Shown in pieces: positions 21,156-51,025 of a stretch of DNA of 64,000 nt. Both the position numbers and the translations under genes were made by a program. How positions within the stretch are numbered: the stretch's first letter is position 1; each line of letters starts with the position of its first letter. The DNA comes from Magallana gigas (taxonomy: Eukaryota), in contig NC_088854.1 of NCBI RefSeq assembly GCF_963853765.1, forward strand, positions 13,144,001 through 13,208,000, in the 5' to 3' direction. The notes under the pieces were generated by a model. It did not search any database. It was given only the letters and a program-made list of their open reading frames with translations, and was not told the origin of the DNA.

Positions 21156-22532
21156 TTAGGTTCCGATCCTCTCGGACCGTTTCGGAAAGGCATGGCAACG
21201 GTTTTGTTTCCAGAAAGCGGGCTTTATGCAGTATATGATCAGACAAATCATGAGGATAATAAGAGCTATGCCCACTACCACTGCCACAGTGATGTAAATG
21301 GACATCCCTCCCATAGGCTTGGACGTTGTCTGGTTTTCTGCTGGGGCTGTTGTCTGTGTGGCAGTCATGGTTGTTGTCGGGGTGATGGGGGTAGTGGTAG
21401 TTGGAATATCGGTTACGGTCACTTGAATGTTCACCACATTTTGTTTCTTCACATTGTTAGCCTGGACTGTCCACTGACCGTCGTCATCAACGTCCAATGA
21501 CTTTATGGTTAGGACACCTGTCTCAGATACCTCGTAATTTGGATTGTCATAATTATAGTACTTCAACTCCGTCCCATCAGGCTTTGTCCAAATGACGTCA
21601 GGGAATGGGTCTCCTCCAAATGTACATGAAATATTGAGGCTGGAGTGATACTTGCCGGTACTTGAAGTTGAAGAACAACTTACAGATGCCGGTACACAGG
21701 TTAGCTGGGAGGATGGGACATTTACAATGGACATGTATTGGAGAGATTTTGGTGTACTACACGTAACAGATTCCGGTATAGGACTAAGAAGCACGTTTAC
21801 CCACTCCAAGGCACAAGTGCATTTCCAATCGTTGTCATTTAAGTGGATACTCTTTATGTGTGGTAATGTCATTATTGATGAATTGGAAAGTTCTGTAAAT
21901 AGGTTTCCAGCTATATCAATATAAGCCATATTTGTAAGGGTCTTCGTGAAGCTCCAGTCCAACCGTTTAAGTTTGTTTCCATGAAGGTCTAAGACCTTCA
22001 ATATTGGAAGATGGTCTAATAAGCGTTTGTCCAGTTTCTTTAAGCTCATCTCTGCCAGATATAATTCTGTCAATCTTCCTAAATCGTTGAAAGCAGACAA
22101 TTGTAATTCAGTACCATTATTTCCAGATAAATTCAGAACTCTGAGTCTTGTTAACCCCTTTAACGTGTTTTGTGCTATTTCGCCAATTTTGTTGAAAGAA
22201 AAATCCAGTGTAATCAATGTTGTTGGCAAAGAACCGCTTGTTATGGATTCTACATTGCTGAAAGCCATATAAAGTCTCTCCAGTTTCTGGAAGGAATTAA
22301 GATTTTTACTTTCAATCAACGGAATCTGGTTTCGAGAGGAAAAGGTGCCACTGAGTTGTAATGAAGTGAAATGACTTGGGAATGCTGACGGAAAGTTGGT
22401 TAATCCTGGTCTGCAAATAGCAGAATCATTGGAACATTGGCACTTTGTTGGACAAGAAGATTCAACATCTCCAAAACTCACAACAATAAGTACATATGAA
22501 ATCACTGTTATGGGGCTTTTACTTCCCTGCAT
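21156..22532 (-). CDS. LIG1: single-exon LRR-Ig-mucin stalk-TM receptor (458 aa, short stalk)
   Basis: ATG at 22532 (MQGSK...). CPTKCQC LRRNT, 7-8 LRRs, WKCTCALEW...CSTP LRRCT, Ig-like domain (C..GDPFPDVIW...LTI..DDGQW), Thr-rich stalk and hydrophobic TM. Confidence 0.9.
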   Translation of the reverse strand: MQGSKSPITVISYVLIVVSFGDVESSCPTKCQCSNDSAICRPGLTNFPSAFPSHFTSLQLSGTFSSRNQIPLIESKNLNSFQKLERLYMAFSNVESITSGSLPTTLITLDFSFNKIGEIAQNTLKGLTRLRVLNLSGNNGTELQLSAFNDLGRLTELYLAEMSLKKLDKRLLDHLPILKVLDLHGNKLKRLDWSFTKTLTNMAYIDIAGNLFTELSNSSIMTLPHIKSIHLNDNDWKCTCALEWVNVLLSPIPESVTCSTPKSLQYMSIVNVPSSQLTCVPASVSCSSTSSTGKYHSSLNISCTFGGDPFPDVIWTKPDGTELKYYNYDNPNYEVSETGVLTIKSLDVDDDGQWTVQANNVKKQNVVNIQVTVTDIPTTTTPITPTTTMTATQTTAPAENQTTSKPMGGMSIYITVAVVVGIALIILMICLIIYCIKPAFWKQNRCHAFPKRSERIGT

Positions 22533-22637
22533 TGTATGATTATTCAAAGGCGTCTGAAATTTTCCTTTAGATTTGGTCAACTGTCCTGGATAGCGATGTT
22601 TACCTGTGCCTTTCACCTGCTATTGCGGCTTCAATGA

Positions 22638-49384: not shown

Positions 49385-51025
49385 CTATTCGTAATGTTCA
49401 TAACTCCCAATATTATGCACTCTTCGTGTCCGTCTCGGAGTGAGGTTCCGGACCGTATCGAAAAGGTCTTGCTTCGGTTTCTTTTCCGACATTGGAGGAG
49501 GTTTCTTCTTCCGTGTACAGCAATGAATGACCAGACAAATCATGGAGGTAATAAACGCGCTCCCACCGGCAGCCGCCACCATCATGTAAATCGTATTCAT
49601 GGAGAACATTCCTTCCGCCGGCTTAGGCGTCGTCTGGTTTCCTGCAGGTGGAACTGGAGTGGTATTTTTAGCTGTCGTCTGCTTAACAGTGGTTGTGGTG
49701 GTGGGTTTGGCGGTAGATGTTGTAGTAGGTTTTTCAGTGGTAGTGGTAGGAGTAGTGGTAGGAGGGGTGGTGGTTGTGGTGGTAGGAGGGGTGGTAGTCG
49801 TGGTGGGGGTACTGGTTGTTGTCGGGGTGGTGGTTGTGGTCGTCGTAGTGGTAGGGGTAGTGGTAGTAGTGGTGGTGGTAGTCGTTGTAGTGGTGGTTGG
49901 AATATCGGTCACGGTCACTTGCATGTTGACCACATTCTGTTTCTTCACGTTGTTGGCCTGAACCGTCCACTGGCCGTCGTCATCAACGTCCAATGACTTT
50001 ATGGTAAGAACACCTGTCTCAGATACTTCGTAATTTGGATTATCATAGTTATAGTACTTCAACTCCGTCCCATCAGGCTTTGTCCAAATGACTTCCGGAA
50101 ATGGGTCTCCTCCAAATGTACACGAAATTTTGAGGCTGGTGTGATATTTGCCGGTACTTGAAGTTGAAGAACAACTTACAGATGCCGGTACACAGGTTAG
50201 CTGGGAGGAAGGGACATTTACAATGGACATGTATTGGAGGGTTTCTGGTGTACTACACGTGACAGATTCCGGTACTGGACTAGGAAGCACTTTTACCCAC
50301 TCCAAGGCACAGGTGCATTTCCAATCGTTGTCATTTAAGTGGATACTCTTTATGTGTGGTAATGGCATTATTGATGAATTGGAAAGTTCCGTAAAAATGT
50401 TTCCGGAAATGTCGATATAAGCCAGATTTGTAAGTGTCTTGGTGAAGCTCCAGTCTAATTGCTTGAGTTTGTTTCCATGAAGGTCTAACACCTTCAACAT
50501 TGGAAGATGGTCTAATAAGCGCTTGTCCAGTTTCTTTAAGCCCATCTCTGCAAGATATAATTCTGTTAATTTGCTTAAATCGTTGAAAGCAGACAATTGT
50601 AATTCAGTGCCATTATTTCCAGACAAATTCAAAACTTTGAGTCTTGTTAACCCCTTTAACGTGTTTTGTGCTATTTCGCCAATTTTGTTGAAAGAAAGAT
50701 CCAGCGTGATCAACGTTGGTGGCAAAGAAGCGCTTGCTATGGATTCTACATTGCTGAAAGCCATGTAAAGTCTCTCCAGTTTCTGGAAGGAATTTAGATG
50801 GCTGCTCTCAATCGACGGAATCTGGTTTCGAGAGGAAAAGGTACCACTCAGTTGTAATGCAGTGAAATGACTTGGCAATCCAGACGGAAAGCTGGTTAAT
50901 CCTGGTCTGCAAATAGCAGAGACATTGGAACATTGGCACTGTGTTGGACAAGAAGTTTCAACCTTCCCAAAACTCACAACAATAAGTACACATGAAATCA
51001 CTATGGCACATTTACTTTCCAGCAT
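49385..51025 (-). CDS. LIG4: intact LRR-Ig-mucin-TM receptor (546 aa)
   Basis: ATG at 51025 (MLESKCAIVIS...), full domain set, tail ending IGSYEHYE. Near-identical to LIG3 in TM, tail and 3' flank. Confidence 0.92.
   Translation of the reverse strand: MLESKCAIVISCVLIVVSFGKVETSCPTQCQCSNVSAICRPGLTSFPSGLPSHFTALQLSGTFSSRNQIPSIESSHLNSFQKLERLYMAFSNVESIASASLPPTLITLDLSFNKIGEIAQNTLKGLTRLKVLNLSGNNGTELQLSAFNDLSKLTELYLAEMGLKKLDKRLLDHLPMLKVLDLHGNKLKQLDWSFTKTLTNLAYIDISGNIFTELSNSSIMPLPHIKSIHLNDNDWKCTCALEWVKVLPSPVPESVTCSTPETLQYMSIVNVPSSQLTCVPASVSCSSTSSTGKYHTSLKISCTFGGDPFPEVIWTKPDGTELKYYNYDNPNYEVSETGVLTIKSLDVDDDGQWTVQANNVKKQNVVNMQVTVTDIPTTTTTTTTTTTTTTPTTTTTTTTTPTTTSTPTTTTTPPTTTTTTPPTTTPTTTTEKPTTTSTAKPTTTTTVKQTTAKNTTPVPPAGNQTTPKPAEGMFSMNTIYMMVAAAGGSAFITSMICLVIHCCTRKKKPPPMSEKKPKQDLFDTVRNLTPRRTRRVHNIGSYEHYE

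Follow-up and report, generated by a model that had tools for sequence, protein, structure and literature searches.

How did four neighbouring genes come to be related to one another in three incompatible ways? This question is raised by a stretch of 64,000 nucleotides from Magallana gigas (NCBI RefSeq assembly GCF_963853765.1, contig NC_088854.1, positions 13,144,001 to 13,208,000 of the forward strand; hereafter the window, whose own numbering is used throughout). The window harbours a young tandem array of four intronless genes, LIG1 to LIG4, which encode predicted LRR-Ig-mucin-transmembrane (TM) proteins. All four lie head to tail on the minus strand and are met in the order LIG4, LIG3, LIG2, LIG1 in the direction of transcription. 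A preliminary description of this DNA, made from its letters, had proposed that repeated ectopic conversion or crossover shuffles ectodomain segments among these paralogs. Our analysis leads to the conclusion, at a probability we put at roughly 0.88, that the array evolves by germline non-allelic homologous recombination (NAHR). Recombination tests, silent sites and independent contigs support the earlier proposal, with two refinements: LIG3 is read as a crossover hybrid, and an analogy with the VLR system is dropped. Searches by protein, DNA and 21-mer covered the whole 564-Mb assembly (29 contigs) and recovered no close copies other than LIG1-4 themselves, which are 92-95% identical over 1079 nt and all lie within 30 kb.

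A protein-guided codon alignment of the ectodomain core of LIG1-4 is free of gaps over 365 codons (1095 nt). It contains 147 variable sites, of which 36 are informative: 16 unite LIG1 with LIG2 and LIG3 with LIG4 (12/34, pattern A), 8 unite LIG1 with LIG3 and LIG2 with LIG4 (13/24, pattern B) and 12 unite LIG1 with LIG4 and LIG2 with LIG3 (14/23, pattern C). Their order along the core is AAAAA BBBBBB AAAAAAAAA B CCCCCCCCCCCC B AA, and the best tree along the ectodomain switches from 12/34 to 13/24, back to 12/34, then to 14/23 and finally to 12/34 again. The 13/24 mini-block was already visible to the preliminary description as an ESKNL motif common to LIG1 and LIG3 and an ESSHL motif common to LIG2 and LIG4. 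Genome-wide, the 21-mer GAAAGTAAAAATCTTAATTCC of the former is found only at 22293-22313 (LIG1) and 39533-39553 (LIG3), and GAGAGCAGCCATCTAAATTCC of the latter only at 31540-31560 (LIG2) and 50789-50809 (LIG4). The two versions differ at 6 positions within 13 nt, 3 of them synonymous; on the minus strand the SKNL haplotype occupies 22299-22311 in LIG1 and 39539-39551 in LIG3, and the SSHL haplotype 31546-31558 in LIG2 and 50795-50807 in LIG4. Judged from the repeat motif, this 13-nt block appears to lie in the outer (convex) part of LRR1 and not on the ligand-binding face.

The 14/23 block lies in the Ig domain, where LIG1 and LIG4 carry PDGTELKYYNYDNP and LIG2 and LIG3 carry PDKTELR(H/Y)YNYDYP, again as first described. 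All 12 sites of this pattern fall at core nt 669-955, which on the minus strand corresponds to 38785-39071 in LIG3, 30792-31078 in LIG2, 21545-21831 in LIG1 and 50041-50327 in LIG4. Half of them (6/12) sit in codons without an amino-acid difference. Within the block, 184 consecutive nt are the same in LIG2 and LIG3 (30808-30991 and 38801-38984; core 756-939), and substitutions private to LIG4 are present as well. Outside the core, the stalk, TM segment and tail are common to LIG3 and LIG4 (96-97% identity where aligned), a likeness that extends through about 880 bp of 3' flank. The signal-peptide start is common to LIG2 and LIG3 (MENKRKITAISCVLN in LIG2) once the first 46 coding nt of LIG3 are placed at 47158-47203, as explained below. 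Each of the four block relationships given in the preliminary description is thereby confirmed in the DNA.

No single duplication tree fits these data, as the preliminary description had maintained, and GENECONV-style and tree-based checks of the kind that it had proposed return a significant recombination signal. In a runs test, the 36 informative sites show 6 pattern switches vs 23 expected, and 100,000 shuffles never gave fewer than 10 (p<1e-5). The PHI statistic is 0.28 vs 0.66±0.04 expected (p about 5e-5), and a GENECONV-like permutation assigns a global p=0.001 to the 184-nt tract shared by LIG2 and LIG3. Maximum-likelihood (ML) trees were fitted to segments with branch lengths free in each, the segment borders being picked after the site patterns were known. 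These trees prefer 12/34 by 13 log-likelihood units (lnL) at nt 1-171, 13/24 by 21 lnL at nt 172-230, 12/34 by 20 lnL at nt 231-640 and 14/23 by 30 lnL at nt 641-990; together the segmented trees beat one tree by 54.9 lnL. Synonymous divergence (dS) follows the same pattern. In the Ig segment it is 0.013 for LIG2-LIG3 vs about 0.2 for the other pairs, and in the mini-block segment it is 0 for LIG1-LIG3 vs about 0.43 for pairs with different haplotypes. Both blocks are bounded on either side by the background relationship, in the order A-B-A and A-C-A.

Shared sites of this kind could also arise if the same substitutions occurred twice, at hot spots of mutation or under convergent protein-level selection, and two isolated 13/24 sites (core 606 and 1023) could well be such homoplasies. 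But the blocks themselves comprise six identical changes in 13 nt and twelve in about 290 nt, about half of them synonymous, and are clustered at p<1e-5; selection on the protein, moreover, leaves the shared silent sites and shared flanks unexplained. We therefore regard homoplasy as a practically negligible explanation of the blocks.

The most mosaic of the four genes is LIG3. With an inserted transposon removed in silico, a 3SEQ-like walk that treats LIG3 as the child of LIG2 and LIG4 is significant (p<=4e-4) both for the core alone and for the extended region, and places three breakpoints. LIG3 is LIG2-like in the 5' flank and the first signal-peptide codons, to about 47178. It is LIG4-like across the LRR part, from about 39700 to 39252, and after a short ambiguous stretch it is LIG2-like over the Ig block, 39071-38753 (25 sites to 1). 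From 38722 to about 37363, a stretch that takes in the stalk, TM segment, tail and 3' flank, it is LIG4-like again, by about 246 sites to 7. LIG3 is separated from LIG4 by 3.5% in the LRR part, 2.9% in the 3' coding region and 3.7% in the 3' flank; its distance from LIG2 is 1.3% over the Ig block, rising to 7-11% over the 5' flank.

The flanks and spacers of LIG3 extend this comparison beyond the coding sequence. The 5' flank of LIG3 is 92.6% identical to that of LIG2 (31731-31971) over about 240 bp, to about 47398. Its 3' flank (37256-38137, minus strand) is co-linear with the LIG4 3' flank (48507-49384), at 96% identity over aligned positions, and makes up the downstream end of the segment shared by LIG3 and LIG4. 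A unit of about 375 bp is tandemly duplicated (91% identity) at 36448-37256, exactly where the high LIG3-LIG4 identity stops. The LIG4-LIG3 and LIG3-LIG2 spacers are co-linear, each consisting of a 3' flank, a repeated element and a 5' flank, and the LIG2-LIG1 spacer matches the other two at only about 68%. In each of the three spacers the repeated element (0.5-0.8 kb; 27728-28480, 35756-36304 and 47422-48213) lies at the corresponding place, the copies being 70-80% identical; it is either part of an old duplication unit or a dispersed repeat. Because LIG3 has a LIG2-type front and a LIG4-type back and sits exactly between LIG4 and LIG2, we read it as a crossover hybrid. LIG1, LIG2 and LIG4 are roughly equidistant in the core, at 7-8%, whereas immediately beyond it they diverge by 20-55%, which hints at a wider homogenisation of the LIG ectodomain.

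The transposon that had to be removed accounts for the broken appearance of LIG3 in the window. The main body of the gene, from the middle of the signal peptide to the stop codon, lies at 38138-39732 (minus strand). Its reading frame enters satellite DNA at 39733 without an in-frame ATG, and the start was found 7.4 kb upstream, at 47203, in a displaced 5' coding piece of 46 nt (47158-47203, minus strand) that comprises the ATG and 15 codons (MVNKRKITAISCVLI). The intervening element, 7,425 bp long (39733-47157), has terminal inverted repeats (TIRs), is inserted in the signal-peptide codons and is flanked by a 9-bp target duplication, TACTTATTG, at 47166-47158 and 39732-39724. Each end consists of a perfect 95-bp TIR followed by inverted arrays, about 2 kb long, of a satellite of about 86 bp. 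The combination of terminal inverted repeats with a target-site duplication of about 9 bp is that of Foldback/MULE-like elements. No open reading frame (ORF) of at least 150 aa and no transposase of the matching superfamily was found inside 39733-47157, and from its sequence the element is probably a non-autonomous copy. When it is removed in silico, LIG3 becomes an ORF of 543 aa. Word depth over the first 65 nt of the element reaches 8,500-15,000 in three DNA runs, vs about 10-20 in adjacent single-copy DNA, and because of this depth its terminal sequence must be very abundant in oyster genomes.

Sequences from other individuals bear both on the transposon and on the blocks. Contigs from three DNA runs and one RNA run (X15) were placed on 37300-39800 at a likeness of at least 97%. 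Of the 31-mers in the LIG3 stretch, at most 65% are present in any public run (about 60% in the best runs), as is expected because the runs represent other, polymorphic individuals. The transposon site is empty in 4/4 of these runs: in each, a contig runs on beyond 39732 into CACATGAAATCGCTGTTATTTTTC, which reads as the reverse complement of the start piece of LIG3 from 47167 onward. An 830-nt contig from X15 covers 39046-39732 together with 143 nt of the intact LIG3 5' end, and differences from LIG2 rule out that gene as its source. Because it is absent from LIG3 in all four runs, the insertion must be recent or private; a transposon knock-out allele of LIG3 is thus segregating.

On its 687 nt within LIG3 (98% alike) the X15 contig carries SKNL in a LIG3 background, so that the most mosaic gene of the array is reproduced outside this assembly. 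A 333-nt contig from run X3 (39254-39586) is identified as LIG3 by private letters of that gene at 39470, 39491 and 39497 and by the absence of the letters that LIG4 alone carries at 39311 and 39509; this same LIG3 allele nevertheless carries all six SSHL letters at 39539-39551, as opposed to SKNL in the window and X15. The 13-nt block is therefore polymorphic within LIG3 between individuals, and a conversion tract at this position is still segregating. Contigs of 191 nt with the LIG2/3-type Ig block were found in both X3 and X15, and the bulk contigs of each run show one or two block states. Among database proteins from other C. gigas data there are a LIG1 allele with SSHL and LIG2 alleles that, at the protein level, combine the LIG1/LIG4-type Ig block with several LIG3-type residues. 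The named M. gigas protein model P0005 has the LIG2 block states seen in the window.

These contigs also speak to the possibility that the mosaics are an artefact, in which parts of one paralog were carried into another by short-read polishing or by wrongly joined reads. The copies invite such errors, being 92-95% identical over 1.1 kb with LIG2 and LIG3 exactly identical for 184 nt, and the comparison draws on contigs from other individuals. At 39299 and 39354, LIG3 has G and T, respectively, which none of the four runs shares and where LIG1, LIG2 and LIG4 have A and C; the two letters are variants private to the haplotype or else errors left in the assembly. However, long reads are implied by the absence of gaps in the window and by the resolution of a transposon whose inverted satellite arms measure 2 kb. 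Substitutions private to single genes also occur inside the blocks, such as those of LIG4 in the Ig block, and X15, X3 and P0005 reproduce block states independently. An artefact therefore seems to us very improbable.

The discordant segments are read directly from the alignment, and from them we infer the following history. An unequal crossover between misaligned LIG2 and LIG4 genes would have created the hybrid LIG3, a duplication of the anti-Lepore type, and would have brought to it a LIG2-type upstream spacer and a LIG4-type downstream spacer. At least one further exchange is needed because LIG3 switches parent three times. The crossover may have taken place in the signal-peptide region, in which case a conversion of about 0.3 kb would later have affected the Ig block between LIG2 and LIG3; or it may have taken place at the border between the Ig domain and the stalk, in which case the LRR part would later have been converted from LIG4. 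The very low divergence of the Ig block favours a recent LIG2-LIG3 conversion, although the intervals overlap. A separate and very short conversion, of 13 to about 60 nt, would have moved the SKNL/SSHL block between non-sister copies. The presumed mechanism is mismatch-limited strand invasion between copies that are 92-95% identical over a core of about 1.1 kb.

It may be asked whether short-tract conversion is required at all, since rounds of unequal crossover combined with allelic recombination of diverged haplotypes could also mix segments. One unequal crossover does account for the two ends of LIG3, and oysters are highly polymorphic. Each block, however, has background on both sides and so needs two close exchanges of its own, which amounts to a conversion tract; in addition, the X3 allele of LIG3 differs from the window allele just by the 13-nt block within its 333-nt contig. 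Crossover without conversion is accordingly improbable in our view. Only the 13-nt block and the Ig block require short conversion tracts.

Several points weigh against the proposed NAHR history or limit its detail. For pairs other than LIG2-LIG3, the GENECONV-like test found no tract that is individually significant. The block states of LIG1, LIG2 and LIG4 come from the assembly, those of LIG3 from independent contigs as well. The database alleles P0001 and P0002 lend weak support, being possibly chimeric products of older short-read assemblies. The 5' flanks of LIG2 and LIG3 are 7-11% diverged, compared with 3-4% between LIG3 and LIG4, so that a single crossover fits imperfectly and a longer exchange history is possible. 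Finally, four sequences cannot fix the direction or the number of events.

An outgroup gives some polarity to the block patterns. The 67% identical paralog L005, the next relative in the assembly (same chromosome, 41 Mb off), was tried for this purpose and rejected, as its silent sites are saturated and dS is undefined; C. virginica was used instead. Its syntenic locus contains two copies in opposite orientation (L013:10001-11632 and L013:16864-18297). Their ectodomains are 92% identical to each other and only 71-77% like those of LIG1, LIG2 and LIG4, the three scored, and their TM segments and tails are unrelated, so that the pair combines a conserved ectodomain with different tails as LIG1 and LIG4 do. 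With this outgroup, LIG2 and LIG3 have a derived state in common at 6 Ig-block sites, and LIG1 and LIG4 at 2. The Ig sharing of LIG1 and LIG4 is therefore mostly a retained ancestral state. The LIG4-type tail is about 85% conserved with its C. virginica positional orthologue. A more distant gene of the same type (locus L006, 33%) lies upstream of LIG4 at about 57708-58769, the fifth LRR-Ig-mucin-TM gene of the window, and its C. virginica orthologue (L013:2856-4463) occupies the same position. Because that orthologue adjoins the C. virginica 543-aa gene, synteny is kept and LIG4 is the positional orthologue of the latter. No clear orthology links the LIG1 tail to the second tail of C. virginica (score 54, vs 92 to LIG4). 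The ectodomains could have been homogenised independently in each oyster species by concerted evolution; alternatively, given the LIG1 tail scores, the genes may have been duplicated independently in each species.

The cluster is the one first described at 22290-50820, but its gene bodies reach further, from 21156 to 51025. LIG1 (21156-22532, ATG at 22532) is an ORF of about 458 aa with a putative signal peptide, an LRRNT-LRR-LRRCT unit, an I-set Ig domain, a short Thr-rich stalk, a putative TM segment and a short divergent tail. LIG2 (30259-31776, ATG at 31776; about 505 aa) has the same architecture, and LIG4 (49385-51025) encodes 546 aa. The Pfam domains LRR_8, LRR_4, I-set and Ig_3 score above cut-off in 4/4 proteins. 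Read by eye from the translations, LIG1-4 continue after the Ig domain into a Thr/Pro-rich stalk, then about 23 hydrophobic residues, and end in a short, basic tail; the N-terminus, read in the same way, is hydrophobic. Among solved structures, the LRR and Ig parts align in a single stretch to LRRC4C/NGL-1 (3zyj), LRRC4 (3zyi) and LINGO-1 (2id5), and the top score is that of LRIG1. Among named proteins, those nearest to the LIG genes are 'LRRC24-like [Crassostrea gigas]', a wrongly fused model under the name 'peroxidasin [Magallana gigas]', and one from C. virginica that is 73% identical; NCBI labels relatives LRRC24-like or LRRC4-like.

A single additional A in an A-run shifts the frame of the LIG2 cytoplasmic tail (30259-30330); a different frame still encodes the ancestral LIG3/4-type tail (…DRFDTVRSLIPRKTRRMHNIGSYEH…). 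The shifted tail is also found in the database proteins P0002 and P0005 and is thus not private to this assembly. Over 21156-31815, public gene models fuse neighbours: in P0005 ('peroxidasin', 496 aa) as in P0001 (722 aa), LIG1 is attached to the rear half of LIG2. The annotation of the LIG cluster is unreliable, and the locus carries a warning: NCBI-type models here merge adjacent copies, and trees and orthology calls for this family mislead when they take in the whole gene.

What does block exchange produce in these receptors? Because the overall ratio of nonsynonymous to synonymous divergence (dN/dS) is 0.17-0.32, the data indicate purifying selection on LIG1-4 without hypervariability. A programmed somatic process has nevertheless to be considered, in which LRR and Ig segments would be reshuffled by templated copying in haemocytes or some other cell type, the germline mosaics being left as a by-product or footprint. 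If true, this would be the mollusc counterpart of VLR or FREP diversification, individualising a surface receptor. Direct support for it is lacking, and the hints are the LRR domain type, the multi-copy locus and the microbial-pattern binding reported for oyster LRR-Ig proteins. These hints are outweighed by several observations. The LIG genes are complete ORFs without non-coding 'stuffer', and the interruption of LIG3 is a transposon that is absent in other animals. Neither partial LIG copies nor donor cassettes were found in the whole assembly by any of the three kinds of search. Hypervariability is missing, and the three DNA runs show at most two block states. We hold somatic diversification of this locus to be exceedingly improbable. 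By analogy with MHC or KIR loci, germline block exchange might be kept by balancing selection and so provide receptor variety at the level of the population; this version is unlikely, but more likely than the somatic one. What exchange in the array yields is variety among alleles and paralogs of a predicted cell-surface protein; it is not a programmed diversification.

In architecture, LIG1-4, with their putative signal peptide and TM segment, resemble the group that includes LRRC4/NGL, LINGO-1, LRIG1, AMIGO, Drosophila Kekkon and oyster CgLRRIG-1/2, whose members share a signal peptide, an LRRNT-LRR-LRRCT unit, one I-set Ig domain, a TM segment and a short tail. They differ in the long Thr/Pro-rich, mucin-like stalk between the Ig domain and the TM segment, and in being intronless and clustered in tandem. 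Identity to the vertebrate members is low, and the likeness, one of architecture, does not establish orthology. Wang et al. (2017, Fish Shellfish Immunol 70:308, as cited in PMC6994640) described the oyster proteins CgLRRIG-1/2 as pattern-recognition receptors and reported the binding of microbial patterns by oyster LRR-Ig proteins.

The preliminary description had also compared the LIG mosaics, as an analogy only, to the cassette copying by which VLRs are diversified. In lampreys and hagfish, the VLR locus consists of an incomplete germline gene flanked by hundreds of partial cassettes, from which the functional gene is assembled somatically and specifically in lymphocytes. The likeness is that LRR-coding sequence has moved between homologous templates by a copy-type mechanism. 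The LIG array differs in comprising four complete genes and in varying as ordinary-looking germline alleles, and its larger block lies in the Ig domain. None of LIG1-4 is an incomplete gene with non-coding intervening sequence, and in place of a library of partial donor cassettes the whole assembly yields four full genes and one 67% relative. The analogy thus finds no mechanistic support. A further comparison is with the FREPs of Biomphalaria, a mollusc family of immune lectins for which gene conversion and point mutation have been reported. Here too a mollusc multi-copy receptor family has variants that resemble recombinants of a few source genes, but the claim for FREPs concerns somatic variants, whereas the LIG data show germline alleles and paralogs only.

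The best match is with tandem families that undergo interlocus conversion and unequal crossover, known from the Lepore and anti-Lepore hybrids of the globins, the opsins, MHC/KIR and HSP70. For oysters, PMC11268181 discusses gene conversion among HSP70 paralogs; for the LRR-Ig genes of oysters our literature search turned up no such report. As in those families, the LIG copies are highly identical paralogs (>90%) within one genome, with discordant trees and clustered incompatibility. Their tracts run from tens to hundreds of nt, include silent sites and are bounded by background; one gene is a hybrid that sits between its two parents, and conversion alleles are segregating. The LIG cluster is thus a clean, statistically solid and, for LIG3, independently reproduced case of unequal crossover together with short-tract conversion. 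With four genes, all donors known, an outgroup available and at least one conversion allele and one knock-out allele segregating, it is small enough to suit the measurement of conversion rates and tract lengths, and is a useful locus for the study of non-allelic conversion in a highly polymorphic bivalve. It differs from the known cases in the gene family, bivalve LRR-Ig-mucin receptors being new for the process. The process itself is the textbook dynamics of young tandem families, which here act in a new gene family without any new mechanism.

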